Of a stretch of 64,000 nt of DNA, positions 5,831 to 64,000 are shown piece by piece. The number at the start of each line of letters is the position of its first letter. Within the stretch, counting starts at the first letter, position 1. The DNA is taken from assembly GCA_004431415.1 (NCBI GenBank), contig QPMI01000395.1:62001-126000 (forward strand), written 5' to 3'. The notes under the pieces were generated by a model. It did no database searches. It was not told where the DNA came from and saw only the letters and a list, made by a program, of their open reading frames with translations. The position numbers and the translations under genes are program-made. Source of the stretch: Cyanophora paradoxa CCMP329 (Eukaryota > Plantae > Glaucophyta).

Positions 5831-6940
5831 GCGCCCCGGCGCCGCCCGCGGCCCTGCTCGCGCCCCGAGACCCGCCGCCGCGCGTCGGCCTGGTCTCCGC
5901 CGCCCGCCGGGCCCGCCCCGCCGCCCCGAAGCCGCAGGCCTGCGCCCCGTCGTCCGCAGCGCCCCGGCGTCGCCCGCGGCCCCTGCTCGCGCACCGAGAC
6001 CCGCCGCCGCGCGTCGGCCTGGCCTCCGCCGCCCGCCGTGGCCCGCCCGCCGCTCCCGAAGCCGCAGGCCTGTGCCCCGGCGTCAGCTGCGCCCCGGCGT
6101 CGCCCGCGGCCCCTGCTCGCGCACCGAGACCCGCCGCCGCGCGTCGGCCTGGCCTCCGCCGCCCGCCGTGGCCCGCCCCGCCGCCCCCGAAGCCGCAGGC
6201 CTGCGCCCCGTCGTCCGCAGCGCCCCGGCGTCGCCCGCGGCCCTGCTCGCGCACCGAGACCCGCCGCCGCGCGTCGGCCTGGCCTCCGCCGCCCGCCAGG
6301 GTCCGCCCCGCCGCCCCGAAGCCGCAGGCCTGCGCCCCGTCGTCCGCAGCGCCCCGGCGTCGCCCGCGGCCCCTGCTCGCGCACCGAGACCCGCCGCCGC
6401 GCGTCGGCCTGGCCTCCGCCGCCCGCCAGGGCCCGCCCGCCGCCCCGAAGCCGCAGGCCTGCGCCCCGTCGTCAGCTGCGCCCGGCGCCGCCCGCGGCCC
6501 TGCTCGCGCACCGAGACCCGCTGCCGCGCGTCGGCCTGGCCTCCGCCGCCCGCCAGGGCCCGCCCCGCCGCCCCGAAGCCGCAGGCCTGCGCCCCGTCGT
6601 CCGCAGCGCCCCGGCGTCGCCCGCGGCCCCTGCTCGCGCACCGAGACCCGCCGCCGCGCGTCGGCCTGGCCTCCGCCGCCCGCCGTGGCCCGCCCGCCGC
6701 TCCCGAAGCCGCAGGCCTGTGCCCCGGCGTCAGCTGCGCCCCGGCGTCGCCCGCGGCCCCTGCTCGCGCACCGAGACCCGCCGCCGCGCGTCGGCCTGGC
6801 CTCCGCCGCCCGCCAGGGCTCGTCCCGTCGCGCCCGAAGCCGCAGGCCTGCGCACAGTCGTCCGCAGCGCCCCGGCGTTGCCCGCGTCCGTCGCGCCCTG
6901 CTCGAGCACCGAGACACGCCGCCACGCGTCGGCCCGGCTC
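5831..6940. repeat. GC-rich ~130-bp minisatellite, about 8.5 units
   Basis: CTGCTCGCGCACCGAGACCCGCCGCC... recurs at ~5854, 5983, 6114, 6243, 6373, 6500, 6630, 6760 and 6898. Confidence 0.95.
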
Positions 6941-11158: not shown

Positions 11159-11363
11159 TCTAGGTATACGTATGCGTAGATCGCACGGATCTATAGCTAG
11201 ATCTCTCCTCGATCGATATCGCACATCCTTTTCCTCTCTTTCATTTCCCCTCTCTCTGGATCTCTCAATTATCCGGTCAGGATTATCCGCGAGTTTCCTC
11301 CCTTCCCGAGTCCTCAAGCTTAGGCTCTCCGCGAATTCGAAACGTCGAAATCCGCTCGCAGCG

Positions 11364-19228: not shown

Positions 19229-20989
19229 ATGAAAGTCAACACATGTACAGGCGCACGCAACATGCATACGTTTCCAGCCAGCACATGTACAGCGCCGGTC
19301 GACAGCACCATAGCGCCGAAAGTCGGCCGCAGCATTTCAAGGCAGAATTCCCGCCCCCGGATCATCTCTGCAAATCCATCGGAGTCATCCCGTACGCATG
19401 CCAGAGCGTGCGGGGCCGCGTCGGCGCAAAAGTCGTCCAAGGATAGCGTTTCACAGCCTGCGTCAGCGAAGGGAAATGCGCTGGCGCTGCAGCCGCCTCG
19501 GTGTGCCTGTCCAGCCACGTACAATGAGGAGAGGAATAACGACCGGCTGGATAATATTAATCTGCTTATGCGCGTTTCGCAGTCTGGCATAATCGACCAG
19601 GTTCGGGCATCTTTCCCTTTCGAATTCGCGCCTCTCAATAAAATCCGGTGTCGAATTCAATGACGTTGACGCCGCCGAAATTGACCATCGACGTCAGTTG
19701 TGGGAGCCGTGGTCGCCGTGGACGCAGTGGTTGGAGTGGAAGCTGTACACGCCATCGATATCTCTAGATCTGCCCCGCGATCTCTGTCGCAGCCGTCCCG
19801 GCCCGCCGTGGAAATACCTGCTGCCGAAGGCGCCTCGCGATCGAGCTCGAGCCCATCGATATCGCGATCCTCCGTCTCGTTCCCGGCGTACGAGGCCTTC
19901 CACTTGGTTCGCGCTCTCGCTTTTAGCATAAGATTGCATGCGCGCGAGTTCTTCATGATCAATGACCCGAAACTTCACCAGGCCCTGCACCGCGCGATTT
20001 CGTCGCCAAAAGTGCCATGGGACCTCGCCGACGGCAAGCAACTCGCACAGGTGCGAGTTTCTGAGCCCGTTCCTCTGAGCGATAAAAGTCTCGATCTCGA
20101 TTAGTACCAAATGAGATGCGAAGCTGACTTGCACACGTGCGCGCGCGCAGGCAAACTGGGCCGTCGACACAGACGCGTGTGGGGGCACGCAAATGTCGCG
20201 GGAAGTTTTCGACAGGGCGGTGATCAGCGTGTCTAAGTTCTGGGCCGCGAAGCTCGAGAGCAGCGGATTCTTTACCGGCATACGCCTCCTGGCGCTGGAC
20301 GCCGGCCTGGAAGGCGATGTCGACCTAGATCACCTCTTCCTCGCTTGCTTTCTCGTGGTGCGAAATCATCGCCTCTTGCTCCTGCGCATGCGCATGCATC
20401 CTGAATATCGCATGTTCCGGAGCCGTTAAAAAAACGTTAACCCTGAATACGCAGGCTGTGACGAAGCCTGTTTCTCCGATTGCGATATCGATGGCGCGAC
20501 GGCAAGCTTAAGTTCGAGGAACCGCTGCAACTCCGTCATTCGGTCTTGGATGGGTGCGCGACGCGTACGGCCGCTACTTGTTCGCCGAGTTGAATTCACA
20601 GTTTCCTAATACACGCGTGCGCTGATCGTGACTCACTCACGTCATGTCAGAGGTGGAGCTTGGCGTTTGCCATCCGAAAGGAGTCATGTCCGCGCTCCAG
20701 AAGCTGGTCGAGGCGTCGACCCGCCGCGCCCGCTGCTACAGCTCCGCGGCCGTGGACGGCGACGCCGTTGTCGATTTCTCTAGATCTGCTCTTCCGCCTC
20801 CCGTTGCGGCTGTCGAGACGCGCCCGGCGACGCCGGAACCGTGCCTGGAACGCGACCGGCCTGCGTCCGCCCCGGGGCCACGTCGGCCGGCTCCCGTTTG
20901 CCCCCGAGGGGCTCCTTCGCTTTGCGCTGCACAACCGCATGGAGAAGCTACTCGCACAGCGCTGTAGAGCTCGACTTCGATCTTCGTAG
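19229..20989 (+). CDS. Hypothetical multi-exon gene X, copy 1
   Basis: GT-AG splicing joins frames: ...YEAFHL/FFMINDPKLHQALHRAISSPKVPWDLADGKQLAQ/ANWAVDTDACGGTQMSREVFDRAVISVSKFWAAK...FLV/AVTKPVSPDC.../EVELGVCHPKG...RLRSS*. Exons are conserved in the diverged paralog at 46946-48877. Start codon uncertain. Confidence 0.6.
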
Positions 20990-21296
20990 CTGCGGCTGCA
21001 GTGCAAACGTTTCCAGTACAGCTACAGATCTCGAGCTTGAGGTAGCTATATAGGCGCGGCCCCAGTCTGTAGCTGCCAAACCATTTTCATATTACCGCGG
21101 CCGAGGTTTACGTAACAAATACTGATATACTTAGTGGCAATACCTTCGCATGCAGAGAATTCGAAGCTTTATGTATATTTTACCCTTCGGAGAGACAAGA
21201 CCCAATTGCAAATGCACATAGGTATACTATAGCTAGTACTGTACCTGTAGCAACTGCAGTACACAAGATGGGAATTTCATGGTGTAGTATTAAATA

Positions 21297-23019: not shown

Positions 23020-23224
23020 TCTAGGTATACGTATGCGTAGATCGCACGGATCTATAGCTAGATCTCTCCTCGATCGATATCGCACATCCTTTTCCTCTCT
23101 TTCATTTCCCCTCTCTCTGGATCTCTCAATTATCCGGTCAGGATTATCCGCGAGTTTCCTCCCTTCCCGAGTCCTCAAGCTTAGGCTCTCCGCGAATTCG
23201 AAACGTCGAAATCCGCTCGCAGCG

Positions 23225-26200
23225 ATGGCGGCCTTTCTCCCGGCGCCGCTCCCTCCCGCGCGCGCCTCAGCACCGACCGCGCCCCTCGTCGTCTTTGCGC
23301 CGCTCGCGATCGGCCGCCCCGCCGGCGCTGATCGCGCCGGCTCTCGTTCCGCTTGCAATTGGTCCGGCAGCACACTCGGTGCCGGGCGGAGGCGACCGGC
23401 CGCAGCGGGGGCGATCGGCCGGAGCTTTTTCGCGGGCGTGGGATCCCCCGCGCGCCTCCTGAGCCGCGGCCGGCCAGCAGCGGCAGGACAAGGTGCGCTC
23501 GGGAGAGTGCGCGAAAACGTGCCGGTTCAGCTTAAATAAGCATACTTACATGCGGAATCGCTTTTATTTGGGTTGCTCACGCGCGCGCAGGAGCCCGCTT
23601 TGAGTTCGCGGTCCGGGCGGAGCTCGGCGGCCCGGACGTCGACAGCCCCCTCCCGCCGGCACCCACCGGCTCCGACGCGCCCGTCAGCGGCGGCAGCAAC
23701 GGCGCGGGCGCGGCATCGCCGGCCCGCAAGCCAGACGCGCCGGGCGGCCAAGCTGCTGGCCTCGCGTGCCCGCTCCCTTCGCCGTCGGCCGAGGCCGGCG
23801 CGGCAAAGCAGACGGAGCCGACGGCCGATCGCGAGCAGCAGCCCTTCGAGTGGCGCAAAAACTGGTGCCGCAAATTCGAAGCCGAAGCTCCGGCGCGCGG
23901 GCCATCGGACCGGCTGCGGGGCTCACGCGCGCCCGGGCGGCGGGGGCGCGCGCAGGTACCCGGTGGCCTTCGTGGAGGACTTCCCGCGGGCCGCCCGTAC
24001 CCCTTCTCCCTCTTCGACGAGCCCCTCGTCCTCTGGGCCGTGCGCCCCGCCCGCCCCGCGCCCGCGCCGCGCCTCGCGTCCCGAGCTCTCGAGCTGCCGG
24101 CCGGCGCGCGCGGGGGGGGCGCAGGGGGAGGGCGGGGCGGTGCGCTGCGTGCTGGACCGGTGCCCGCACCGCGCGGTGCCGCTCTCGGACGGGCGCCTCG
24201 AGGGGCCCCTGCTCGAGTGCGGCTACCACGGGTGGCAGTTCGACGGATCCGGCCGCTGCGCGCGCATCCCGCAGCTCGAGGCCGGCGCCGCCATCAACCA
24301 GCGCCGCGCCTGCGTCGCCGCCTACCCCGTCGCCCTCGCCCAGGGCATCATCTTCGTGCCCGCCCCGCCCCGCCTCCCGAGCCCCGAGTCCCTTTAATTT
24401 CTCCCGAAAACGCCTCTCCAACCGTCTTGCACTGAGCGCGGGGCCGGCCGCGGGGGCAGGTGTGGGCGGACCCGAAGTCGCCCCCGACGAGTCCCTCATC
24501 CCCCGCATCGGTCCGCCCGAGCTCTAACTCTGCTATTAATATCCCTTACTGCCTCACTATCCACTCATCGGAGAACGTAGCACGTTTAATTTTAAATTTA
24601 ATTTTCGCATGCGCGTCTTTTGGATACGCGTCCTTTCTTAGTTTTCGCGCGGCCCGCGAAATCGGGCTTGCGTTCAATCATAAATTTCGCAGGACTAAAG
24701 TTCGCGTTTAATTTCGCAGGGCTGCTGGAGCACCCGGGCCTCTCGCCGGCCGTCTTCGACATGTCCCGCGACGTCCCCGTCGACCACACGATCACCCTCG
24801 AGAACCTCATGGGCGCGCCTCCTTTCTATGCACATATGCTAAGATTTTTAGAGTTGCAAATGTTTTTGGTTTCATCAGTTCTTTTGCATGCGCAGATCCC
24901 TCCCACGTACCCTTCGCGCACCATGTCCGCCTACATTTCGCGCCCTAGCCCACAAAGCCGACCTCGAATTGACTAGATTTCGGTGGTTTCGCAGGGGGCG
25001 CAGGGGACGCGGGAGTTCGCGGGCCCCATCGAGACGCGCGTCGCCGGCCGCTCGCCCGACGGCTTCCGAGGGACCTTCCGCATCTTAAGGCGGGCATTAA
25101 AATTATTGGCGTTGAGAAATTAAAGATAGAGCGCGTCGCCTTGCTAATTCTCCACTTTTCTCTTATCGTTTTGTCGCCGAAGCCCGGGGACACCCGCCGC
25201 ACTCGGCCACCGCACAATTGAGTTTCGGGTGCGGATGCGCCTCCAGGATGCGCTGCAGATATATATGCCGATATCTTTGCCTCCGGATAAATTGCTTCGC
25301 GATCGTGCGCGCAGGCGCCGTGCATGGTCGACATCACGATCGAGCAGGACAACGGGAGCGTCTCCAAACAGGCGAGTCGACGTCTTCTCATTCATCGACC
25401 GATCGAAGAGTCTCTTCAGCTATTATCGTTTTCTCTCGGCTTCGAACTCAAAAACCTTAGACACAAGAAATATGAATCTGAAGCTTTCTCAGATTTTCTG
25501 CGGACCCAAAGGGCCCTGATGCATCTCTTCGCAGGTCTTTTACGTGGTGCCGCTGGGCCCCGGGCGCGCCCGCGTCCACACCCGCTTCGTCAACATCGTC
25601 CCGAAGCCCGTCCTCGTGCGCTGCCGCCATCCCCGCCCTACAGGCGCGTCTCAGGCGCATCTCGCTCCCTGACTCAGCGGCACGCGCTCTCCGCCGCGCA
25701 GGCGGTGGCGCCGCGCTGGGCCCTCCACGCCTTCGCGAACCTGCCCCTCGACCAGGACATGATATTCCAGTGCGACCATCGGATTAAATTTTAAATGTGC
25801 TACGTTGTTATAAAGAGGACCAGGATTAAAATGCGCTGCGTTGTTACAAAAAGTTTTCGTTTTTGCTGTATAGGACATGATCTTCCAGTGCGCTCGATTC
25901 TCAGCGTTGTTCTGAAGAGCTTGAATTGCTTTAATTTCTCTGCGGCTTGAGCTTAAGCTTTAATTTACACTTTGCTTTGCTGCAGGTGCTACCAGCAGCG
26001 GCACCTGCGGGCGGCGGGCGGGGACTGGGCCGCCGCCTACTCCATTCTCGCCCCCTGCGACCGGTGCACCCCTCTAGATTTAAAGCAGCAGCTTTTCTTC
26101 TTCTTGTTTTCGCGCGCCTGGTATGGATGGCTTAAGCTTTAGGCAGGTTCGTGGTGGAGTTCCGGCGCTGGCTGGACGGGGCGCAGGCGAGCCTCCCCGT

Positions 26201-33855: not shown

Positions 33856-34060
33856 TCTAGGTATACGTATGCGTAGATCGCACGGATCTATAGCTAGATC
33901 TCTCCTCGATCGATATCGCACATCCTTTTCCTCTCTTTCATTTCCCCTCTCTCTGGATCTCTCAATTATCCGGTCAGGATTATCCGCGAGTTTCCTCCCT
34001 TCCCGAGTCCTCAAGCTTAGGCTCTCCGCGAATTCGAAACGTCGAAATCCGCTCGCAGCG

Positions 34061-37000
34061 ATGGCGGCCTTTCTCCCGGCGCCGCTCCCTCCCGCGCGCG
34101 CCTCAGCACCGACCGCGCCCTCGTCGTCTTTGCGCCGCTCGCGATCGGCCGCCCCGCCGGCGCTGATCGCGCCGGCTCTCGTTCCGCTTGCAATTGGTCC
34201 GGCAGCACACTCGGTGCCGGGCGGAGGCGACCGGCCGCAGCGGGGCGATCGGCCGGAGCTTTTTCGCGGGCGTGGGATCCCCGCGCGCCTCCTGAGCCGC
34301 GGCCGGCCAGCAGCGGCAGGACAAGGTGCGCTCGGGAGAGTGCGCGAAAACGTGCCGGTTCAGCTTAAATAAGCATACTTACATGCGGAATCGCTTTTAT
34401 TTGGGTTGCTCACGCGCGCGCAGGAGCCCGCTTTGAGTTCGCGGTCCGGGCGGAGCTCGGCGGCCCGGACGTCGACAGCCCCCTCCCGCCGGCACCCACC
34501 GGCTCCGACGCGCCCGTCAGCGGCGGCAGCAACGGCGCGGGCGCGGCATCGCCGGCCCGCAAGCCAGACGCGCCGGGCGGCCAAGCTGCTGGCCTCGCGT
34601 GCCCGCTCCCTTCGCCGTCGGCCGAGGCCGGCGCGGCAAAGCAGACGGAGCCGACGGCCGATCGCGAGCAGCAGCCCTTCGAGTGGCGCAAAAACTGGTG
34701 CCGCAAATTCGAAGCCGAAGCTCCGGCGCGCGGGCCATCGGACCGGCTGCGGGCTCACGCGCGCCCGGCGGCGGGGGCGCGCGCAGGTACCCGGTGGCCT
34801 TCGTGGAGGACTTCCCGCGGGGCCGCCCGTACCCTTCTCCCTCTTCGACGAGCCCCTCGTCCTCTGGGCCGTGCGCCCCGCCCGCCCCGCGCCCCGCGCC
34901 GCGCCTCGCGTCCCGAGCTCTCGAGCTGCCGGCCGGCGCGCGCGGGGGGCGCAGGGGAGGGCGGGGCGGTGCGCTGCGTGCTGGACCGGTGCCCGCACCG
35001 CGCGGTGCCGCTCTCGGACGGGCGCCTCGAGGGGCCCTGCTCGAGTGCGGCTACCACGGGTGGCAGTTCGACGGATCCGGCCGCTGCGCGCGCATCCCGC
35101 AGCTCGAGGCCGGCGCCGCCATCAACCAGCGCCGCGCCTGCGTCGCCGCCTACCCCGTCGCCCTCGCCCAGGGCATCATCTTCGTGCCCGCCCCGCCCCG
35201 CTCCCGAGCCCCGAGTCCCTTAATTTCTCCCGAAAACGCCTCTCCAACCGTCTTGCACTGAGCGCGGGGCCGGCCGCGGGGCAGGTGTGGGCGGACCCGA
35301 AGTCGCCCCCGACGAGTCCCTCATCCCCCGCATCGGTCCGCCCCGAGCTCTAACTCTGCTATTAATATCCCTTACTGCCTCACTATCCACTCATCGGAGA
35401 ACGTAGCACGTTTAATTTTAAATTTAATTTTCGCATGCGCGTCTTTTGGATACGCGTCCTTTCTTAGTTTTCGCGCGGCCCGCGAAATCGGGCTTGCGTT
35501 CAATCATAAATTTCGCAGGACTAAAGTTCGCGTTTAATTTCGCAGGGCTGCTGGAGCACCCGGGCCTCTCGCCGGCCGTCTTCGACATGTCCCGCGACGT
35601 CCCCGTCGACCACACGATCACCCTCGAGAACCTCATGGGCGCGCCTCCTTTCTATGCACATATGCTAAGATTTTTAGAGTTGCAAATGTTTTTGGTTTCA
35701 TCAGTTCTTTTGCATGCGCAGATCCCTCCCACGTACCCTTCGCGCACCATGTCCGCCTACATTTCGCGCCCTAGCCCACAAAGCCGACCTCGAATTGACT
35801 AGATTTCGGTGGTTTCGCAGGGGCGCAGGGACGCGGGAGTTCGCGGGCCCCATCGAGACGCGCGTCGCCGGCCGCTCGCCCGACGGCTTCCGAGGGACCT
35901 TCCGCATCTTAAGGCGGGCATTAAAATTATTGGCGTTGAGAAATTAAAGATAGAGCGCGTCGCCTTGCTAATTCTCCACTTTTCTCTTATCGTTTTGTCG
36001 CCGAAGCCCGGGGACACCCGCCGCACTCGGCCACCGCACAATTGAGTTTCGGGTGCGGATGCGCCTCCAGGATGCGCTGCAGATATATATGCCGATATCT
36101 TTGCCTCCGGATAAATTGCTTCGCGATCGTGCGCGCAGGCGCCGTGCATGGTCGACATCACGATCGAGCAGGACAACGGAGCGTCTCCAAACAGGCGAGT
36201 CGACGTCTTCTCATTCATCGACCGATCGAAGAGTCTCTTCAGCTATTATCGTTTTCTCTCGGCTTCGAACTCAAAAACCTTAGACACAAGAAATATGAAT
36301 CTGAAGCTTTCTCAGATTTTCTGCGGACCCAAAGGGCCCTGATGCATCTCTTCGCAGGTCTTTTACGTGGTGCCGCTGGGCCCGGGCGCGCCCGCGTCCA
36401 CACCCGCTTCGTCAACATCGTCCCGAAGCCCGTCCTCGTGCGCTGCCGCCATCCCCGCCCTACAGGCGCGTCTCAGGCGCATCTCGCTCCCTGACTCAGC
36501 GGCACGCGCTCTCCGCCGCGCAGGCGGTGGCGCCGCGCTGGGCCCTCCACGCCTTCGCGAACCTGCCCCTCGACCAGGACATGATATTCCAGTGCGACCA
36601 TCGGATTAAATTTTAAATGTGCTACGTTGTTATAAAGAGGACCAGGATTAAAATGCGCTGCGTTGTTACAAAAAGTTTTCGTTTTTGCTGTATAGGACAT
36701 GATCTTCCAGTGCGCTCGATTCTCAGCGTTGTTCTGAAGAGCTTGAATTGCTTTAATTTCTCTGCGGCTTGAGCTTAAGCTTTAATTTACACTTTGCTTT
36801 GCTGCAGGTGCTACCAGCAGCGGCACCTGCGGCGGCGGGCGGGGACTGGGCCGCCGCCTACTCCATTCTCGCCCCCTGCGACCGGTGCACCCCTCTAGAT
36901 TTAAAGCAGCAGCTTTTCTTCTTCTTGTTTTCGCGCGCCTGGTATGGATGGCTTAAGCTTTAGGCAGGTTCGTGGTGGAGTTCCGGCGCTGGCTGGACGG

Positions 37001-45093: not shown

Positions 45094-45315
45094 ATAAATG
45101 CAATGTTTCGCAGACTGTAATATGCAATAGCAAGTTGATGAAAATTCGTGTAATTAGAGGTAGCTATATATATATATTGCGTTCAGGACGCACGAAGTTG
45201 GCATGGGCTTTGGGACGATATCGATATTGACGAAGCGGGCGTGGAGACGGGTGCGCACGGGGCCCAAAGGCATGCGCATCACTAGAAGATTTGGTGACCT
45301 GCGAGAGCGGAGTAC

Positions 45316-46486
45316 CTCCCTCCCGCGCGCGCCTCATCACCGATCGCGACAGCGTCCTTTGCGCCGGCTCTCGTTCCGTTGAGTCCAGCTTCGCATGCGG
45401 CACCGAGCGGAGCCGTCCGGCTGCAGCGGAAGCGATCGGCGGGAGCTTTTTCGCGGGCTCGAGAGCCCCCGCACGCCTCCTGAGCCGCGGCCGGCCGGCA
45501 GCGGCAGGGCAAGGTGCGCTGGGGAGACTGCGCGAAAACACGCCGGTTCGAAATTCAGCTCAAATAAGCATATATACTTGCATGCGAAATCACTGTTACT
45601 TGGGTTGCTTACGCCGTACGCGCACGCATGCGCATGCGCGGGAGCCCGCTTTGAATTTGCGGTCCGGGCGGAGCTCGGCGGCCCCGACGTCGGCAGCCCC
45701 CTCCCGCCGGCGGCCGCCGGCTCCGACGCGCCCGTCAGCAGCGGCAGCAACGGCGCGCGCGGGCGCGGATTCGCCGGCTCGCAAGCCAGACGCGCCGGGC
45801 GGCCAAGCTGCTGGCCTCGCGTGCCCGCTCCCTTCGAATTCGCCGTCGGCCAAGGCCGGCGCGGCAAATCAGGCGGAGCCGGCGGCCGATCGCGAACAGC
45901 AGCCCTTCGAGTGGCGCAAGAACTGGTGCCGCGAAGTCGAAGTCGAAGCCCCGGCCGTTCGCACAATTGCAATTGAGTTTCGGGTGCGCATACTTAGACG
46001 CCTCTACGATTCGCCTTGGTCTTGAATTTGTCGCTGCAGCTATGCCAATCTCGAGCTCTTCAATTTGACCCCCGATTAATTGTTTCGCGATCTTTCGCTG
46101 CGGCGGTGCCCGGAGCCGCGCCTTAGCAGCCGCGGTGGCTGCGGTTCTTTTGATGAAGTCCGCCTCCGCCTTAGGGCACATGCAATTCTACTCGTTCGCC
46201 CAGGGGTGCCTGTACGGATCGTCCATGATGCAGCACGCCTGCCGAGCTTGCAGTGAGTGCGCGCTTGGTGGGGTGAGCGCGGCGCCGGCGCCGCGGCGCA
46301 CGCACCGCGAAAGAGACATTGCCGAGCGGTTTGCCGGCTGGCGCCGGGATGAGGCAGGAGCGCAGGTAGTCCGCTCTCGCAAATTCGCTCCGGTCCGCGT
46401 TGCTTTTTGGGCCCCGCGGCCGCGCGCGCGCGCGCCCGCCTGCACGCCCGCTTCGTCAACATCGATATCGTCCCAAAGCCCATGCC
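45316..46486 (+). pseudogene. Internally deleted Rieske oxygenase pseudogene (gene A-like)
   Basis: Homologous to gene A exon 1 (no ATG), intron 1 and exon 2 up to FEWRKNW. It then jumps to sequence like 13350-13450 and 13695-13755. Rieske and Fe-binding exons are absent. Confidence 0.8.
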
Positions 46487-51060: not shown

Positions 51061-51963
51061 TAGTACGGGACAGCACCCGGTGTCTGGGCCGGTGACCGTT
51101 TTCTTTCCAAGTCTCATATGCATTGTTGTCTCAACCGGCTATACAGTCGACCCGACGCAGCAGCTCTAAATCTTCAAGATCTTGAGACTCAGTTACTCCG
51201 ATCCGTCATCTGCAAATTGTCTGAAGGCTACTACTAAATTAGTACTAATACTTCATATGATCAGACGCAAGCTGAAACTTCAAAAACAAAGTTACCTCGA
51301 GGGGGGTCCGAGACCGTCCGACGGTCCAATTTCTACTGCATGGCTGTTCGGAGCCTGGTCCCCGATCTTTCAGTGCGCGTATGATACCGCATATGCGAAC
51401 TGAAGCTGTCGGTGCCTGACACTGCCTGTCACGTAGCTTTAGACCGATTCGACGTCGACGTCGACCGCCATGGCCCTCATGGGTACCACGAAAAGACTTT
51501 CGGTGACAGGAAAAAGACCGACTTGCGAACTGGCCGGCATAGGCAGCGTGAATCTGCGATATCATGACAGACAATCCGACGGGTAGCAAGCCAAAGGGGC
51601 CGGGGGGGTAACAGCTGACCCTCCCTTGCAATAAATCACAATTGCAAGAATTGCGATCTATTATGAGAAAGTTTTAACAATTGTGTTAACATCGGCCTCG
51701 GAGTTTTAACATTTTTTTTTTTGAGAGACTACGGTGGGGCGAACCCCCCGTAGGTAGTGATATTAAAGACAACAAAGCAATCACAAATCAAAGATACAGT
51801 AAACTAGCACAAAATATATACAGAATCAAGAGGGATCACGAGAATAACATCAAAGAAGGATTCTTTATAATTAAAAGATCGCGAAGAATTCGAATGCAAG
51901 AAGATTCCACGGCCAGCCTGCTCTCGACTCTGGACTCTGGAGTCTCGAGCTCCGCGCCGCTCC

Positions 51964-54947
51964 TCAGAGCGATCGCGAGCGCCGGAGGAGCACGGAGGCG
52001 TTGCGGAGGGGCGTCGGGCCGCCGGGCTCCAGCGCAGCGAAGTTCGGCAGCGCCTCCCGCGCCCGCCCCTCTGCACGCGCCTGTGTGCCGGCGCCGGCGC
52101 CGGCACCCCCAAGTCAAGACGAGGTTAGTTAGACGTCGACCCGGCCCCAGAGCGCTGAATCGTAGCGGCGGCGCCGGTCGCGGGCAGGCTCAGGGCGAGT
52201 TGTATCAAGAGATCTAGATTTTATATAGTTTACTTTTAATGCTTACGAATGCTAACGACCAGCATCGCTACCGTAGTACTCGGCTAGTGAGCCGTTGAGG
52301 CCTAGTTGTAGCCTTGTTATAGTTGCGGTACCGGTGATTAATTCGCGAATTTCAGCGCCAGGGCGGGAACCCTAGCGCTAGCGCCAGCTGCAGCATGCGC
52401 ACCCGGACGGCTGCGAGGGCGGCCGCCCTGCCCTCGGGCCCCCGCCCCTCGTCCAGCGCCGCCTGCGCTCGCGATCGAAGCGATCGCGACGATCGCGGCG
52501 ATCGCGAATTTCGCGTGCAGATTCGAGGGCGGACCTCGAGGTAGGCTCCGAGGTGCGCGAACTGCATGGCGACGATCCGCGCCGCGGCCGCCGCGAGGTC
52601 GCTCGGGCTCGGGCCGGGGCCGGTCACCCCCAGCAGAGCCTGTGCATGCGGGACCGTTTGCAATCACGATGACGGGATCAGATCTTTCTTCGGATCCAGA
52701 TGCACGTTAGTTTTCAGGGGTACATGTGCACCTGGAAGGAGCCGATGTTGTTCGTCTGCCGGGTCTCGACGCGCTCCAACGCGAGCCCCGCGGGCGCCGT
52801 CCCGTCCTGCTCGTCCGCGCGCGGCACAAATATTAATTACAACTAATAAACTGGAGGAGGCACAAATTACAACTAAATACAACTAAATAAACTGAGTTTC
52901 GCGGAGGAGGCGCAGAGGGAAAAGGGAAAGGCTCACCTCGAAGGGGCCGGTGAAGTCCTCCAGGGTCCGGTAGTGAAAGAGGGGGACGACCCGCGCCGCC
53001 TCCCCCGGCGCCCACTCTGCCGGGTTCGAATTGAATCCGTTCGGGGGAGCTCGAGGTGGGCGCCAACAACGATCGAACAGCAGATCTAAAGAGGGGGTCA
53101 CGCACCCCCCGCGGCGACGGCGTCGCGGATCCCGCGTGCAAGGCAGCCCTGCAAAAGTAGCAAAAGTAGAGGCGCGGGTTCTTCAGAGCCGGCGCCGGCG
53201 CGCTTGAGTCTGCGCAGAGCACCGGATGTATGGAATTGAAGATGCGCCACGCGTCGCGCTGCGCCTCGTCGCTGCGCGCGCGTGCCCCGGCGCCCGTCGC
53301 GAAAAACCAAGCGCGAAAAAACGAAAATGCGCGAAACCGAAAGCGGAGCGCCAAAATGCGCAAATCCGAAATACGCGAAGGGCGCACGCGGGGCGGGGGC
53401 GGACGCCAGCCACGAGAAGGAGGGCGCCGCCCGGGCGCAGCTCCTCGGCCCGGCGGGCAAGGAACGCGCGCCAGTCCTCCGCCGCCTGCGGCAGGGCGTC
53501 CCTCCACGCGTACGGTGATCCGATGCAGAGCTCCAATGTATAAATATAATTGCAATATAATTACGCCTGCGCGCCCTGACTCGACGGGATCGAACCTGAG
53601 CCTCGACGGCTGCCCGCTCGCTAGGGCTCAGCTCTTCAAAAACGAACGAGGAAGCCGACTGGTCCGACGGTCGGGATCGTGAGCATACTCGAATAATGTG
53701 CGGGCCGGGCGTAAACGCACAGAGAGAGGCGCCCGGGAGAGCCAGTGGATGGAGGTCGAGCAGAGGGCGAGGTCGACGGTCCCGGGGGGCGCGCAGGCCC
53801 CGTGAAGGGAGCGGGGTACGACGGCGGCGTGGACGCCGGGCAGCCGCTGGGGGTACGCGCCCGGAGCGCCCAGGCCGGCGAGGAGGGTGCCGAAGTCGTG
53901 TTCGGGGCTGTCCGCGTGCACTGCGGAGCGCGATAATATTTAGTACGCAGGTTTCGCGGCTCTGCGGGACTTTAATTAGTCTGCAATCTCAATTTGCAAC
54001 GCGGACGGCAGAGGATGTTGTTGGAGCAGCGCGAGCGCAGGATCTCGGCGACGGTGCCGATAGCCTCGAGCGAGTTGAGTCCCTGCCGGCCCCGGGGCGC
54101 CGGGCAGCGCAGTCGGCAGCGTTCGAGTATTCAGCGCGCGCCCACGACTATTTCTCCAGCGACGCAACGGACCGTTATCCGGGCGTAGTCCACGACCGTC
54201 AAGAGGGCGCCGGGGTCGGCGGGCAACGCCATCGCCCGCGCCGCCTCCAGCAGCGGCCCCAGGCCCTAATTTTATTTTAAGAGGCCATGAGAGAGAGGCA
54301 GCGCTCGCGTATTATATATATTAAGGAAAAGGAGCGCTGCAGGTACCTGATCCACGAAGGCGCGCTCGAGGGCGCGCTCGCGCTCGCGATCGCCATCGGA
54401 GTCCGCCCGCGGCGCAGCCTGCAGCTCTGTTACGCCTGCAGCGCAGAATTTAAAAAGCAGTTACGATGTCGGATCCGGAGCCGCTGACGGGCGCGCTGGC
54501 GGGGCTGTCGGTCGCGACGTCGGGACCGTCGAGCTCCGCCCGCACCACAAAGCGGGTTCCTGCGCAAGCGCACGTGCGTCAACAAATATTCGCGCGATAG
54601 AATGTTTCGCGCTTGTACTGCGTGTAGTTGTGCGGGAATTTGCGGCCGGGATCACCTTCGCCAGCCACTGCCGGCCGGCCGCGGTTTAGAAGGCGCGCGG
54701 GCGCTTCCGAGCCCGCGAAAAAGCTCCGGCCGATCGCCCCCGATTCAGCCAGAAGCTTAATGCTCCGCCCGGCGCCGCGCGCGCCGCCGGAACGACCGGA
54801 TCCGGATCCAGAACGAGAGCCAGCGCGGTCGCGATGGGCGCCGGCGCCGGCGGGGCGGCCGAGCGGCCCGATCGCGAGAACGTGAACAGGGAGGGCTGCG
54901 CATGCAACGCGCGCGGGAGGGAGCGCAGCCGCAACGAAGGCCGACAT
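51964..54947 (-). CDS. SABATH-family (Methyltransf_7) SAM-dependent methyltransferase-like protein with plastid transit peptide, ~12 exons
   Basis: MSAFV transit peptide ending TRFVVRAE, then family motifs in order: VVDYARIT/GLNSL, HADSPEHDFGTLL, VPRSLHG...CSTSIHWLS, QAAEDWRAFLARRAEELRPGG, PLFHYRTLEDF. Probable end NASVLLRRSRSL*; 3' exons less certain. Confidence 0.85.
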
Positions 54948-55500
54948 CGCGATCGGATCACCCGGAACAGAACTCTTCAAAGTTTGCGGGCGCGAGGGGA
55001 AACAGAACAAGGATCGGAGCAAGCTTAAGGGGGAACAGAACAGGGGGACAGAACAGGGAGCAAGGGGGAAGGGGGGAACTTTGCGAGTGACTCTAAGCCT
55101 AGGAGTGTCGCCGTCTTGCCCGCTTCTCCCTAGCTTCCGAAGTTCCAACCGGCGGCACCGCTCTTGCGCCTTAAGCTTGCGCTCCGCATGCGCATGCGCA
55201 GTCCTCCCGTCGACCCCTTCGTCTTTTGGCCCTTGGCAAGTTGCGCCTCCAGCCCTAGCCCCCTCGACCCTCTCACCCCCCGGGCCCAGCCACGGAGATA
55301 TCGATAGCATTTCCGAAAAGACTCTGACATACGACACGAGAATGAACTTTATCCAGCGATTGCAAGTTCTCGTGATCATGATCAATGTTTATCTAGATCT
55401 AATCCTTCTTAGCAGCAGCCATGGAGGCGAAGCGGGCGCGGATCATATTGAGCTCCTTGCGCGTGGCCGGCGCGCTGCGGGCGGGCATTAATGTTAGCAC

Positions 55501-58500
55501 TCATCGCCTCTCTGGATTAAATTGTGTTATTATATAATTATAAATTCGAAGAGAGCGCGTGGACCGGTTCTTGTCGAGCCCCTCGGGGAAGTAGAAGAAG
55601 CGCTTCTCGAGGGCGCGGAGGGGCGGCAGCGCCGCGGCGCACGCGAGCGCGAGGAGGACCGCGCCCGCGGCGAAGGCCGGGGCGGCGGCGGCGGCGGCGG
55701 CGGCCTCGGGGACGGGCCCGACGCGGCCGTAGAGGGCGGGGGAGGCGAGGAGGGCGGGCGAGCAGCTGCTGCAGAGCCGCACGTGCTGCTCGTACCGGTC
55801 CAGCAACTCCCGCCTGGGCCCCGGGGCCGCGGGGCCCCGGGCCCCGCCTCGGCGCCCGCGCCGCCGGCCGGCCCGCGCCGCTGGTTCGGCATTGTCGCCC
55901 ACGCCTGCCCACCGCGTCAGCCGCGGCTCGCTGAGGCGGAGCCCGCGGCGCGGCGCATGCGCGTGCCGACTCCATCCAGAGGCGGAAGGCGGCGACGAAG
56001 GCGTCGCAGCCGGCCGGCACGTACCACTCGCGGCGCCAGTCGTACCCCCCGGGGCGTAGCCGCGCCTCCTGCTCCATCAGGAGCACGAGGTCCTGATCCA
56101 GCACCAGGTTCCTACCCGCCGCTATTATAATTAACGCCACAGCTTCCAATGAATTTATAAGGCGCAGGCGCGCGGAGGGGCAGAGTCGCTATAGACGCGC
56201 CAGCGCCTTGCGCGCTTCAAGCAAATTAACGCCGCGGGGTCCTGGTCCTGGTCCAGAACCAGGTTCCTATCCGCCGCTATTAATTATAACGCCGCAGCTT
56301 CGAATTCGAATAAATTTCTTTTTATAAGGCGCAGGAGCGCGGAGGGGCAGAGTATTTATAAGCTCGCAGTTACTGTCGATGTTAGGCGCCCGTCATGAAC
56401 ATGAAAGCTTAAAACAACGTGAAGATAAATTCTGGAGGCGGGTAGGCGCGCCTCTCCATGTGGTCGATGAAGCGGGGCGCCCGCAGCAGCTCCTTTGCGC
56501 TGCGCGTGAAGCTGCCCGCGGCGCAGAAGTCGCTCATGATCAGGGGTAGCCCGTCAAGTCATAAAATTCGCTCGGGGGGAAAGGGGGGGGGGGAGGCGGG
56601 GAAGGGGGGACCGGAGGGGTCCTGGCGTACCGGGCAAAGATGCGGGAGCGCCCGTGGCCGAGGGGTACAGTGTAGAACACCACACCGCTCTCTCCGATCG
56701 CGAAGGGGAGCCTGCCGATGGGTCTGTATAAATGGAGGGGCCGCTCTTGGCGGGCCGGGGCGGGGCGGGGCGGGGCGGGGCGGAGACGGGTCGGGGTACC
56801 TGAAGATGTAGCCACTCGTCACGGGAGGCCGGAAGAACAGGAAGGTTCCCGCGTCGGTCCTGGGGCGGGACGCTGATTAATTAAAGGTTGACGTCAAGCA
56901 CGTGAAAAGAAGGCTTAGATCGGCACCCATCGGGAAGCTGCAGCTGGGGGCCGAGTTCGAAGGCGGCCATGAAGAGGCCCGCGCGGCCGGGCTCTGGGCG
57001 CTCAAGGAAGCGCAGGGGAAGGGGCCCCGAGGCGTAGCGGTTCCCCTGGGCGGGCCGTGGTGCGCGAAGGGGACGTGCGTCGGGTCCAGGAAATTCTCCA
57101 CCAGCACGTTGTAGTCGTACGGCCTGAGATCGCGATCATTAGCTCCGAATTCCAGGATCTCTAAGAAATGATATTTTAAAAAGCTCCAGGAAGCTTCGAG
57201 AGGGTACGGAGCCTGAAGCAATCGTGAGGATCGGGCTTACAATTAGCTTCGCATTCAAGAAAGCCCTAGGAGATATAAGAAAGCCCTAGGTTATCAAAGA
57301 AATCTTTGGGATGTATAAGAAAGCTCTAGGATATGTAAGAATTCGAAAGCTCTCGGATATTTAAGAAAGCTCTGGGATACAAAAGAAAGCCCTAGGATAT
57401 ATATGCAAGAGACGGACAGGTCGCGGACGAAGTCAACGCTGGTGACGCCGGGCCGCTCGAGCAGCTCCGACGTCGGGATCGAAGACTCGTCCCCCGCCGC
57501 GCCCGCCTCGCCCCACACGAAGACGACCCCCTGCCGCACCACCACCGCGTGCGCCGCCGCGCACGTTCGCTGCCCGTTCACGGCCACGCCGGCCGGCAGC
57601 TGCGGGACCCGCGTGCACTCGCCGGCGCCTGCGCCCCGGCCCCGCCGCCCCATCAGCGCTCAAGAAAGGGCCTGGACTGGACCGATGAGCCTTGATAAAC
57701 ATACATACCATTGAACTGCCAGCCCTGCGCAGCAAGGCGGCCCGAGGGTGAGGGCGGGGACGGGAAAGCTCCAGGGGGGTTCACGTGGCGAGGGGCGGGG
57801 CCGCACGTGGTAGCCGCACTCGAGGGCGCCGGCGCCGGGCTCGTCCTCGGGGACGACGCGGCCCTCGGAGAGGGGCACGGCGCGGTGCGGGCAGCGGTCC
57901 GCCACGCAGCGGACCGCCCCGTCCGCCGCCGACCAGAGGACGAGGGGCTCGTCGAAGAGCGAGAAGCGCACGGGCACGCCCGCCGGAAAGTCCTCCACGA
58001 AGGCCACCGGGTACCTGCGAGCTCGCAATCGATATCGACTCGAGATCTAGATCTAGAGTCGAGGCGCGGCTCGCAAGCAATCGACGGGCGGAGCCTATAT
58101 TCAATTTGGCATAAGTACGCAAACTTATTTAGATGTAATTAATTAGTTGAGTTGATTGGCGAGTTGATTGGTCCTGATCAGTGGGGCTTTAAGGTTTGCA
58201 ACTGCGGCACCAGTTCTTGTGCCAGTCGTAGGACGGGGTCGGCGCCGTGGCGGCATCATCTTGCAGATGAACGTCGCTCTTGGGGGACTCGGCCGCGGCT
58301 GGCGCCGGAGGCGCTTCTCCGCCGGACTCCGCCCGCAAGACTACCGCTCCCGGAGCTGCCGCTCCGCGCGCACAGCGCAGTTTTATTCAGTGTTATCTCA
58401 TATGTTCTGCAGGTTGTACTGCAACTGCGCGCATGGGTGCGCACCGGATTCCGCGAAGCTGCGGCCGGTCGATCGCGACCGGATTGCGACCCCCGCGAAA

Positions 58501-58686
58501 AACGCGCGGCTCGCACGGCTCGCAGGCGATGTTGACGCCGGCCGGAGAGGCGGCCGAGCGGCGACGCCAACGGCCGTGGCATGGCAGAGAGCACCGGCGC
58601 CGGCGCTGAATGCCGACCGCGAGCCGGATCCGGAGAGCGGCGCGTGCACGGGGGTGCAGAACAGGGTCAGCTGCGAATTCGAACAT
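55501..58686 (-). CDS. Plastid-targeted PaO/Tic55-family Rieske oxygenase (gene B)
   Basis: YDWHKNWYPVAFVEDF; CPHR...CGYH/GWQFNG; ENFLDPTHVPFAHH; NLVLDQD; HVRLCSSC; hydrophobic tail. Start codon uncertain (~58650-58840). Confidence 0.9.
57259..57400. repeat. Intronic ~20-bp degenerate minisatellite in gene B
   Basis: About 7 copies of GAAAGCYCTAGGATATNTAA. Confidence 0.75.
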
Positions 58687-62400: not shown

Positions 62401-63751
62401 GGCCAGAAAAGTAATTACGGAACTCGACTCAGAGCTCGGGGCGGACCGATGCGGGGAATGAGGGACTCGTCGGGGGGCGACTTCTGGTCCGCCCACACCT
62501 GCCCCCGGGCCCGGCCCCGCGCTCAGGGCAAGACGGTTGGAGAGGCGTTATCGGGAGAAATTAAAGGGACTCGGGGCTCGGGGGGCGGGGCGGGCACGAA
62601 GATGACGCCCTGGGCGAGGGCGATGGGGTAGGCGGCCACGCAGGCGCGGCGCTGGTTGATGGCGGCGCCGGCCTCGAGCTGCGGGATGCGCGCGCAGCGG
62701 CCGGATCCGTCGAACTGCCACCCGTGGTAGCCGCACTCGAGCAGGGGCCCCTCGAGGCGCCCGTCGGAGAGCGGCACCGCGCGGTGCGGGCACCGGTCCA
62801 GCACGCAGTGCACCGCCCCGCCCTCCCCCTGCGCCCCGGCCATGCCACCCGCGCGCGCCGGCGCCGGCGGCTCGGGACGAGAGGCGCGGCGCGGGGCGCG
62901 GGGCCGGGCGGGCGGGGCGCACGGCCCAGAGGACGAGGGGCTCGTCGAAGAGGGAGAAGGCGTACGGGCGGCCCCGCGGGAAGTCCTCCACGAAGGCCAC
63001 CGGGTACCTGCGCGCGCCCCCCGCCGCCCGGGCGCGCGTGAGCCCCGCAGCCGGTCCAATGGCCCGCGCGCCGGAGCTTCGACTTCGAATTCGCGGCACC
63101 AGTTCTTGCGCCACTCGAAGGGCTGCTGCTCGCGATCGGCCGCCGGCTCCGTCTGCTTTGCCGAGCCGGCCTCGGCCGACGACGACGGGAGCGGGCACGC
63201 GAGGCCAGCAGCTTGGCCGCCCCGCGCCTCGGGCTTGCGAGCCGGCGATGCCGCGCCCGCGCCGTTGCTGCCGCCGCTGACGGGCGCGTCGGAGCCGGTG
63301 GGTGCCGGCGGGAGGGGGCTGTCGACGTCTGGGCCGCCAAGCTCCGCCCGGACCGCGAATTCGAAGCGGGCTCCTGCGCGCGCGTAAGCAACCCAAATAA
63401 AAGCGATTCCGCATGTAAGTATGCTTTTTTAAGCTGAACCGGCACGTTTTCGCGCACTCTCCCGAGCGCACCTTGGCCTGCCGCGGCCGGCCAGCCGCCG
63501 CTCATGATCAGGAGGCGCGCGGGGGATCCCACGCCCGTGAAAAAGCTCCGGCTGCAGCTGATCGCCCCCGCTGCGGCCGGACGCCTCCGCCCGGCACCGC
63601 GTGAGCCGCCGGACCAAGCGGAACGAGAGCCGGCGCGATCAGCGCCGGCGGGGCGGCCGATCGCGAGCGGCGCAATTGCAAAGACGACGAGGGGCGCGGT
63701 CGGTGCTGAGGCGCGCGGGGGAGGGATCGGCGCCGCGAGAAAGGCCGCCAT
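59464..63751 (-). CDS. Plastid-targeted PaO/Tic55-family Rieske oxygenase (gene C)
   Basis: MAAFL transit peptide; CPHR...CGYHGWQF; ENLL/DPAHAAFAHS; VFYVVPLG; NVILDQD; FVAEFRRW; HVRGCPSC; ends YFPFAARLNKMP*. Confidence 0.9.
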
Positions 63752-64000
63752 CGCTGCGAGCGGAGAGCCTAAGCTTGAGGACTCGAGCTCGGGATCCGGA
63801 AGGGAGGAAACTCGCGGATAATCCTGGCCTCGACCTCGAGCTCGCCGCGGCGCCTCGAGCTCGATCGCGAGCTTCAGCTCGGGTGCACGAGATCTAGATG
63901 CACTAGATATCGATATCGCTGCGAGCGGATTTCAACGGTTAGAATTCGATCGCGGTGAGCCTTGGGGAAGAGGAAACTCGAGGCCAGGATATCATGAGCA

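Follow-up and report, generated by a model that had tools for sequence, protein, structure and literature searches.

A probable Rieske-derived transit-peptide leader on a SABATH-like methyltransferase gene of Cyanophora paradoxa

We examined a window of 64,000 nucleotides from the glaucophyte Cyanophora paradoxa CCMP329 (contig QPMI01000395.1, positions 62,001 to 126,000 of the forward strand; coordinates below are those of the window). Within it, the segment 54947-54465 on the minus strand probably forms the functional 5' end of the coding sequence of tig00020510_g9806, a SABATH-like methyltransferase gene, and is derived from the presequence of a Rieske oxygenase gene, and the annotated start of the gene would lie too far downstream. 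How nuclear genes gain leaders for organelle import is a central question of plastid evolution. To our knowledge, few presequence gains with an identifiable donor and recipient are well documented, mostly in land plants, and glaucophytes are the least studied of the primary-plastid lineages. Here, the putative donor and recipient lie less than 10 kb apart in a glaucophyte, the donor intron is preserved, a decayed copy in the same cluster (psi45) serves as a built-in control, and a paralog of the methyltransferase, P0003, points to the replacement of one leader by another at a fixed intron.

The SABATH-like gene would have 15 exons, arranged as follows:

54947-54656, minus strand: exon 1, 292 nt, phase 1 at its 3' end; ATG at 54947 plus 97 codons of Rieske-type presequence (MSAFVAAALPP...GAIGRSFFAG...RGRPAVAGEG), ending in ...GAIGRSFFAGSEAPARLLNRGRPAVAGEG
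54655-54560, minus strand: intron 1, 96 nt, phase 1, GTGATC...GCGCAG (GT..AG)
54559-54465, minus strand: exon 2, opening at 54559 with TRFVVRAELDGPDVATDSPASAPVSGSGSDI; it completes the presequence and contains the putative cleavage site FVVRA/ELDGPDV
54464-54419, minus strand: putative intron 2, 46 nt, GTAACT...CTGCAG, AT-rich, with stops in all three frames
54418-54347, minus strand: exon 3 (AAPRADSDGDRERERALERAFVDQ), the first methyltransferase-specific exon, in which homology to the paralog P0003 begins
54265-54173, minus strand: exon 4 (GLGPLLEAARAMALPADPGALLTVVDYARIT), with an internal Met at 54232 that is the start of the annotated model P0002
54082-51964, minus strand: exons 5-15 (PF03492), the remainder of the gene

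The 3' end of exon 2 varies with the splice donor (GTAACT at 54464, or alternatives at 54518 and 54526). The annotated model lacks the last exon, at ~52110-51967, which was placed by comparison with the C-terminus of P0003. Since P0002 also omits exons 1-3, the public model of g9806 is, judging from the sequence, mis-annotated, lacking three 5' exons and one 3' exon.

Homology to Rieske presequence exons

The SABATH-like block at 54947-54480 on the minus strand shares homology with exons 1 and 2 of Rieske oxygenase genes within the window. These genes, together with one fragment, are:

11364-11835, plus strand: Rieske gene A copy 1; presequence exon 1 at 11364-11631, 97-nt phase-1 intron, start of exon 2
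23225-23696, plus strand: gene A copy 2, a tandem segmental duplicate with the presequence as in copy 1
34061-34530, plus strand: gene A copy 3, its presequence like that of copy 1 apart from three deletions of one base each
45285-45960, plus strand: psi45, a decayed remnant of the 5' part of an A-type Rieske gene, used as an internal control for a dead copy
58200-58685, minus strand: presequence of Rieske gene B, diverged (RAFFAGV.../AVVLRAE, the slash marking the intron site), with an 89-nt phase-1 intron at 58444-58356
63267-63751, minus strand: presequence exons of Rieske gene C; identity to gene A 95%; phase-1 intron of 98 nt

The annotated protein of gene A, P0001 (tig00020510_g9801.t1), reads ...GAIGRSFFAGVGSPARLLSRGRPAAAGQG before the intron site and ARFEFAVRAELGGPDV...APVSGG after it. 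PaO-type Rieske oxygenases combine a Rieske 2Fe-2S domain with a PaO domain at the C-terminus. The Rieske profile PF00355 clearly matched, scoring 71 bits in P0001 and 53 bits in a gene B exon, and gene B also gave weak co-linear exon matches to the PaO profile PF08417 (15-17 bits, cutoff 27). Gene B spans 58685 to ~55540 on the same strand as the SABATH-like gene and lies directly upstream of it. With tblastx, the GC-richness of the DNA made a comparison of genes A and C over their 3' halves unusably noisy.

BLASTN matched the SABATH-like block to 11361-11779, 23222-23641, 34058-34474, 45384-45692 and 63323-63754, with a best E value of 9e-36. In separate MAFFT alignments of the block with gene A copy 1, DNA identity was 74.3% for exon 1, 80% for exon 2 and 52.8% for intron 1. 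The exon 1 alignment scored 27-32 standard deviations above shuffled sequences (z = 27-32). At the protein level, 72 of 121 aligned leader residues were identical between the SABATH-like and Rieske sequences, with a local score of 282 compared with 54 +/- 9 in shuffles. Intron 1 is in phase 1 at the same site throughout and measures 96 nt in the SABATH-like gene, 97 nt in gene A, 98 nt in gene C and 89 nt in gene B. The homology ends after GCGCCCGTCAGCGGC (APVSG) at ~54480, about 15 nt short of the putative exon 2 splice donor, and the 200 nt preceding the SABATH-like ATG showed none. It is confined to the leader; the mature parts are unrelated (PF03492 versus PF00355).

A first-pass annotation of this DNA had described a DNA-level alignment between the first exons of the SABATH-like gene and gene A, a phase-1 intron at the same position, and second exons that start alike and continue to APVSG before homology stops near 54480; it had also asked for an alignment of the presequences. 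That alignment, reported above, bears out each of these points, and the sequence details quoted there are all present in the DNA. Because the site, the phase and the length of the intron are all kept, the leader block appears to have been copied at the DNA level. Taken together, the comparison supports derivation of the two-exon 5' block from the Rieske presequence by DNA-level duplication.

The methyltransferase, its paralogs and its leader

PF03492 comprises SAM-dependent carboxyl methyltransferases. Against a cutoff of 29.8 bits, P0002 scored 58.8 bits and P0003 52.6 bits, and the exon-by-exon matches were co-linear with the profile. Database searches were run with the exons one by one, the joined sequence being used for alignment and dN/dS only. 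The SABATH-like protein is a very distant member of the family, with at most 48% identity over its best exon outside Cyanophora. The nearest relatives beyond this genus, found with a single 66-residue exon as query, were from Streptomyces, an oomycete, a brachiopod and environmental proteins (33-48% identity). The first-pass annotation had raised a possible horizontal acquisition of the enzyme; on this point, the single-exon search gave a taxonomically mixed set of relatives. The HWLS motif with its conserved Trp is present (SIHWLS) and the domain order is as in the relatives, whereas the N-terminal M.G.G.Y..(N/H)S..Q motif of the family is not recognisable. In plant SAMT, the substrate-carboxyl-binding Gln lies in the N-terminal S..Q and the Trp in HWLS. 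The column of this Gln in the relatives aligns with Glu in both the SABATH-like protein and P0003, in a part where the alignment is uncertain.

A search of protein collections with P0002 returned only P0002 itself and P0003 (tig00000654_g2805), the closest paralog, which is ~80% identical in the mature part. P0003, whose N-terminus is that of a predicted gene model, begins with an unrelated extension of 96-107 residues of the transit-peptide type (MAFV, prolines at 14-17 and a V-F-A motif). The homology that P0003 shares with the SABATH-like protein sets in precisely where exon 3 begins, in its first codons and just before APRA. The P0003 leader found only P0003 in the protein collections, and thus no second donor was identified. 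P0022, a distant Cyanophora paralog, starts in its current model with the N-terminus that is canonical for the family and shows no leader of the Phe type. A P0022 peptide is listed among the proteins found in purified cyanelles, and the family may therefore already have been plastid-located.

Transit peptides of Cyanophora open with a hydrophobic stretch that has a Phe within the first 10 residues, and prolines come next, at positions 10-20; V, R and A are enriched at -3 to -1 of the cleavage region, where a Val at -3 goes together with an Ala at -1, and their median length is 63 residues, with lengths accepted up to 110 (PMC4510345). With Phe-type cyanelle transit peptides (Kohler et al. 2015, PMC4510345; Wunder et al. 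2007, PMC2222254) the SABATH-like leader shares the early Phe, a Val/Ala-rich hydrophobic N-terminus with prolines at 10-20, an Ala-rich composition with few acidic residues, and V-x-A before the cleavage site. Its N-terminus, MSAFVAAALPPARV, has Phe at position 4 (MSAFV) and Pro at 10-11. The putative cleavage site with V-R-A reads FVVRA/ELDG in the SABATH-like protein and FAVRA/ELGG in gene A, and the mature protein would likely begin after V-R-A with ELDGPDVATDSPASAPVSG... At ~105 residues, the leader falls at the long end of the published range. Unlike the Phe-type description, it also contains the internal motifs GRSFFAG and PARLL.RGRPA, which are common to the Rieske leaders. It thus carries the hallmarks of a putative Cyanophora muroplast (cyanelle) transit peptide.

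Pfam gave no match for the leader or for plus-strand ORFs across the block, and Rfam gave none in 51500-56000. No peptide of P0003, the Rieske genes or the SABATH-like gene appeared in the N-terminome and proteome supplements of PMC4510345. When the leader was used in a word search, the query (stop-free frame 55388-54582, region 148-246) returned only the gene A model P0001; a precursor of ~500 aa would have escaped it, because the candidates spanned 148-470 aa.

The overall reading of the first-pass annotation was that a methyltransferase had been re-routed to the plastid by capturing the presequence of a neighbour. The Rieske-derived leader, the Rieske donor and the intact block stand as parts of this reading. 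A first re-routing is not supported in that form, as P0003 already has a different extension of the transit-peptide type at the same junction. Replacement of one leader by another at the shared junction is the more parsimonious interpretation, and a swap is the likelier event because the unrelated leader of P0003 joins at exactly the same point. That a cytosolic methyltransferase was first sent to the plastid on capturing its neighbour's leader is possible, though we find it doubtful. It would fit the canonical N-terminus of P0022, and the leaders of P0003 and the SABATH-like protein, being unrelated, could be independent gains. However, two such gains would be needed at one exact junction where a swap needs one event, the P0003 extension also has the MAFV, prolines and V-F-A described above, and the P0022 peptide was reported from purified cyanelles.

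Coding status and direction of transfer

The block is intact, with its ATG, the N-terminal Phe (Phe4), GT..AG splice sites and an open frame. All five exon indels relative to gene A are multiples of three (12, 6, 6, 6 and 15 nt, of which 12, 6 and 6 fall in exon 1), and the indels in intron 1 are of 7, 3 and 5 nt. This contrast between exon and intron and the in-frame indels could partly be caused by constraint on the Rieske side alone. In a simulation of substitutions, with indels left uncounted, a neutral copy kept the ATG, both splice sites, the frame and the Phe in 3-20% of runs. The control, psi45, is 87% identical to gene A and has changed ATG to TTG and the acceptor CAG to CGG, with exon indels of +1, -40 and +4 nt. 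It is younger than the SABATH-like block yet already disabled, and the block carries no such lesions. Against gene A, the block gave a dN/dS of 0.74, a weak level of constraint of the kind that leaders usually show.

The beginning of the methyltransferase-specific part bears on the same point. Exon 3 has no in-frame ATG; upstream, its reading frame runs into a TAA at 54463-54461 without any ATG on the way. It is nevertheless conserved with P0003 from the second codon (APRA...ALER.FVDQ) and matches the point at which the conserved N-terminus of the domain starts in the relatives. The annotated start Met at 54232 is Leu in P0003, and a start there removes ~35 conserved residues. Exons 2 and 3 can be joined in frame, with several in-frame donor and acceptor options, and we infer that they are spliced together. 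The putative intron 2, at 46 nt, is shorter than all 12 annotated local introns (62-130 nt), and its donor GTAACT deviates from the local GT[G/C]CG[C/T] pattern.

A rival reading is that the block is a dead remnant of the 5' part of a Rieske gene, left behind when segments of the cluster were duplicated, with the methyltransferase starting downstream of 54465 without this leader. The annotated start of P0002, the existence of one such fragment in the window, the short intron 2 with its atypical donor, and the dN/dS value all agree with that possibility, as does the search of protein collections, which returned only the genome's own gene models and no transcript-derived protein for the SABATH-like gene. 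We nonetheless judge it improbable: the block is older than psi45 and carries no disabling change, its exon indels are all in frame, exon 3 is conserved with the paralog yet lacks a start codon, and the annotated Met is not conserved and cuts the domain short. The leader block looks like live coding sequence, not debris.

As to direction, the SABATH-like block, at ~68% identity, is closer to genes A and C and psi45 than gene B is, whose leader is only ~50% DNA-identical to the other leaders. The leader is present in every Rieske copy, the deeply diverged gene B included, and in each it runs on into the copy's own mature domain; it is absent from the SABATH paralogs P0003 and P0022. The two-exon layout of gene B (RAFFAG, VVLRAE), which had been taken to suggest a Rieske donor, was confirmed. 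The Rieske family is the likelier donor of the leader, because all Rieske copies carry it, P0003 lacks it and gene B is more diverged. Although direction cannot be read from pairwise similarity alone, it is highly improbable that the methyltransferase gene was where the leader arose and that the Rieske genes received it later, given five Rieske copies with the leader (that of gene B far more diverged than the SABATH-like block), a Rieske exon 2 that continues straight into the Rieske domain, SABATH-like homology that stops ~15 nt before a separate splice donor, and SABATH paralogs without the leader.

Proposed event and known precedents

In the Rieske-donor reading, the source segment would have been exon 1, the phase-1 intron and the first ~80 nt of exon 2 of a neighbouring, putatively PaO-type Rieske gene. 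This segment would have been duplicated within the tandem, recombination-prone cluster and fused in frame to the first exon specific to the methyltransferase, with a short intron newly formed between them, most likely as an exchange of leader cassettes at a pre-existing intron. The resulting precursor would have ~500 residues, ~105 of them in a leader rich in Ala, Arg, Gly and Ser, with Phe4, Pro 10-11 and V-R-A at the likely processing site. After import, the methyltransferase would share an organelle with the adjacent Rieske oxygenases, and the common leader, if this is true, would support the view that these enzymes work together in the muroplast. A broader idea, which we offer as unlikely speculation, is that leader cassettes are regularly exchanged at the conserved intron: one presequence would have spread locally to three Rieske oxygenases and a methyltransferase, and linkage would then have helped to place the enzymes of one plastid pathway in one compartment, possibly in the same sub-compartment via GRSFFAG and PARLL.RGRPA.

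The gain of the SABATH-like leader is a further example of a known mechanism, clean but unsurprising. A literature search returned no paper uniting Cyanophora, transit peptides and exon shuffling. Precedents cited in PMC7456531 are the presequence of plant cytochrome c1, which came from GAPDH (Long et al. 1996, PMC38815), and cases in which another locus supplied the transit peptide (Vibranovski et al. 2006). The present case shares with the cytochrome c1 type a leader on its own exon or exons, copied from an unrelated gene, the order leader, intron and mature protein (the intron here being the putative intron 2), and homology restricted to the leader. Unlike in those precedents, the donor and recipient adjoin in one tandem cluster, the donor intron was carried along, the unrelated leader of P0003 at the same junction suggests replacement, and the host is a glaucophyte.

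Locus layout and local duplications

The window belongs to contig tig00020510 of the nuclear genome of Cyanophora paradoxa, a glaucophyte alga; it is GC-rich, and its proteins are entered in EukProt as EP00741_Cyanophora_paradoxa tig00020510_g9801 and g9806. It contains three to four near-identical tandem segmental duplicates at a spacing of ~10.8-11.9 kb, each carrying one copy of the Rieske oxygenase gene A (A1, A2, A3). On the minus strand, two further Rieske oxygenase genes, C and B, and a SABATH-like methyltransferase gene are arranged head to tail (three genes).

Genes and fragments of the locus
11364, 23225 and 34061, plus: ATGs of the gene A copies, one per tandem duplicate
45285-45960, plus: psi45, a truncated A-like fragment
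62431-63826: inverted region, part of gene C; shares 92% identity with the 5' part of gene A
63751 to ~59470, minus: gene C
58685 to ~55540, minus: gene B
54947 to 51964, minus: SABATH-like gene

Within 10424-45117 the tandem segmental duplicates are 99.5-99.8% identical. An inverted 1.6-kb copy (19410-21026 versus 48519-46903) shows 95% identity, and ~129-nt tandem repeat arrays lie at 5831-6938 and 9717-10562. The leader exon of A3 (34061-34330, plus) differs from those of A1 and A2 solely by three 1-base deletions, all of them within runs of C or G, which could be long-read assembly errors or true frameshifts in one tandem copy. The ATG of gene B at 58685 (MFEFAAD...; region 58685-58445, minus) is out of frame with the conserved RAFFAGV leader, and in the leader's own frame no ATG follows the upstream TAA; possible reasons are an indel introduced by assembly, a further exon upstream that has gone unseen, and a damaged start.

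Leader exons common to the SABATH-like and Rieske genes

The first-pass annotation had proposed that the SABATH-like gene captured the transit-peptide exons of the Rieske genes. All the sequence details it reported for this 5' block (54947-54465, minus) held when ATG, exons, intron and phase were rechecked.

Elements of the SABATH block
54947, minus: start codon ATG
54947-54656, minus: exon 1, 292 nt, phase 1
between exons 1 and 2, minus: intron 1, 96 nt, GT..AG
from 54559, minus: exon 2

Intron 1 corresponds to the 97-nt phase-1 intron of gene A, across which the annotated protein P0001 is spliced as ...AAGQG/ARFEFAVRAEL, and to leader introns of 98 nt in gene C and 89 nt in gene B (phase 1, between RAFFAGV... 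and AVVLRAE). In BLASTN searches, the block was matched at every Rieske copy (best E 9e-36). Each exon and the intron were aligned separately with A1.

DNA identity and internal indels, SABATH block versus A1
Exon 1: 74.3%; indels of 12, 6 and 6 nt
Exon 2: 80%; indels of 6 and 15 nt
Intron 1: 52.8%; indels of 7, 3 and 5 nt

Rieske similarity was absent from the 200 nt preceding the SABATH ATG and from the sequence past ~54480. At the protein level, 72/121 aligned leader residues were identical, and the local score was 282 compared with 54 ± 9 in shuffled sequence. The similarity of the SABATH and Rieske leaders far exceeds chance or shared composition.

The short leader motifs GRSFFAG/RAFFAG and VRAE are kept in every copy, even in gene B with its diverged leader (11364-11835, 54480-54947, 58200-58685). 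A similar SSFLGGK is found in the unrelated leader of P0003, a close paralog of the SABATH-like protein, and this recurrence may reflect a functional import motif instead of common descent.

The confinement of homology to the leader and the phase-1 intron at the same site lend good support to the proposed origin by exon shuffling. In the Rieske copies, exon 2 continues into the Rieske domain (...EQQPFEWRKNW/YPVAF). Leader DNA identity is ~68% between the SABATH block and A, C and psi45 and ~50% between gene B and the others, and the block therefore branches within Rieske leader diversity. Neither P0003 nor the distant paralog P0022 carries a Rieske-type leader. Since the leader is present in all Rieske copies, the SABATH block is nested among them and the SABATH paralogs lack it, the Rieske family was very probably the donor, as originally suggested. 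The copy was made at the DNA level, because the intron travelled along. As this intron is now unalignable, co-copied flanking non-coding DNA would be unrecognisable too, and thus the present upstream boundary does not give the original extent of the duplication.

Gene structure and the 5' end of the SABATH-like gene

The annotated model of the SABATH-like gene, P0002 (tig00020510_g9806.t1, 319 aa), matched PF03492 (Methyltransf_7, SABATH family) with 58.8 bits (cutoff 29.8), and Pfam hits of single exons place the gene in this family as well; the exons of the corrected gene were searched one at a time, and its joined (spliced) model was used solely in local scripts. P0002 mapped exactly to the DNA with ten introns of 62-130 nt, whose donors were mostly GT[G/C]CG[C/T] and acceptors mostly GCAG, and its annotated start is a Met at 54232, inside exon 4. 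The paralog P0003 (tig00000654_g2805.t1, 421 aa), ~80% identical, was found when a single catalytic exon was searched against the whole library. It aligns from 54415 (APRA...ALER.FVDQ/GLGPLLEAARA), and thereby covers both exon 3 (54418-54347), absent from the annotation, and the beginning of exon 4; its C-terminus matches 52110-51976, past the annotated stop. By this comparison P0002 looks wrong, apparently being too short at both ends. Its 3' end reads on into an intron, and the omitted last exon at ~52110-51967 matches the P0003 C-terminus.

In the family alignment, exon 3 corresponds to the N-terminal beginning of the domain, which is conserved. The ATG-free frame of exon 3 extends upstream only as far as the TAA at 54463-54461, and the position of the annotated start Met is Leu in P0003; thus, an upstream exon with a start codon is needed.

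Judged by indirect but consistent sequence evidence, the SABATH block probably acts as the true 5' end of the methyltransferase gene. The block is intact, with ATG, Phe4, both intron 1 splice sites, a 129-codon open frame and in-frame indels only. Unlike the flanking exons, intron 1 has diverged nearly to randomness and has out-of-frame indels. As a control for a decayed leader copy inside the window, we used psi45, which is 13% diverged from gene A and shows ATG changed to TTG, acceptor CAG to CGG, and frameshifting indels in its exons (+1, -40 and +4 nt). The SABATH block is ~2-fold as diverged as psi45 without any lesion of this type. In a substitution-only simulation, a neutral copy had a 3-20% chance of retaining ATG and Phe as well as splice sites and an open frame; the estimate is rough, as it depends on how the divergence is shared out between the two lineages, and the in-frame indels would lower it further. 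Leader dN/dS relative to gene A was 0.74, a weak constraint that is expected of a leader and is not decisive. The similarity of psi45 to gene A stops at ~45955, right after ...EWRKNW.

Three donor/acceptor options would splice exon 2 onto exon 3 with the frame preserved, and all of them retain the leader and the VRA motif.

Options for intron 2 (minus strand)
Donor GTAACT 54464, acceptor 54419: 46 nt, AT-rich, stops in all frames; first-pass option
Donor GTCGCG 54518, acceptor 54419: 100 nt, more typical
Donor GTCCCG 54526, acceptor 54436: 91 nt, more typical

The 46-nt intron is shorter than every one of the 12 annotated introns measured in the window. Its donor GTAACT (54464) and the intron 3 donor GTACCT (54346, minus) both differ from the GT[G/C]CG[C/T] donors of the 12 remaining introns that were measured. 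Intron 3 also has the acceptor TTAG versus the usual GCAG, and the paralog supports both of its sides; hence the SABATH gene does use such atypical donors.

Probable leader replacement, predicted targeting and precedents

It had further been suggested that the captured presequence re-routed the enzyme to the plastid. The capture is well supported, but a first re-routing is somewhat less likely than leader replacement, as P0003 already has an N-terminal extension. This extension comprises 96-107 residues (MAFVGGMV..., prolines at 14-17, V-F-A before GIDQ). Its similarity to the SABATH leader is not significant (z = 0.5), and that to the gene A leader is borderline and probably compositional (z = 2.9). 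Homology between P0003 and the SABATH gene begins precisely where exon 3 starts. On the basis of the predicted P0003 N-terminus, we lean towards replacement, in which one leader cassette would have been exchanged at a pre-existing intron in an already plastid-targeted protein. Initial re-routing of the SABATH enzyme by leader capture, a plausible if less probable course, would need two independent leader gains at the same codon, and replacement is preferred because it takes fewer events. A third paralog of the SABATH family, P0022 (tig00000796_g4233.t1, on another contig), is a distant one; its N-terminus is canonical for the family and lacks a leader of the Phe type. Nevertheless, Table 1 of PMC4510345 gives the P0022 peptide AGEEASMAHYAAPAVGALR (old truncated model 12656_cds:4591, position 64) in its list of proteins detected in purified cyanelles.

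Up to VRA, the SABATH leader has 105 residues (22% Ala, 17% Gly, 13% Arg; 4 acidic, 15 basic), with Phe4 and prolines at 10-11. According to Kohler et al. 2015 (PMC4510345), Cyanophora cyanelle transit peptides have a median of 63 residues, with up to 110 accepted, and are Ala-rich, mostly with Phe in the first 10 residues, prolines at 10-20 and a cleavage region in which Val at -3 goes with Ala at -1. SABATH FVVRA/ELDG and gene A FAVRA/ELGG conform to this published description; import and cleavage of the SABATH leader remain predictions.

The closest relatives outside Cyanophora were Streptomyces, oomycete, brachiopod and environmental sequences (33-48% identity over one exon). The SABATH gene may, as suggested, have been acquired horizontally; any transfer would be old, given its ~14 spliceosomal introns and the existence of at least three paralogs.

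In the literature searched, we found no paper combining Cyanophora, transit peptide and exon shuffling, and none treating a Cyanophora SABATH gene. Organelle leader gain via exon shuffling is already established, as cited in PMC7456531, which refers to the plant cytochrome c1 presequence derived from GAPDH (Long et al. 1996) and to transit peptides borrowed from other loci (Vibranovski et al. 2006). For this reason, the SABATH/Rieske leader is a new and unusually legible instance of a known mechanism, not a new type of system.
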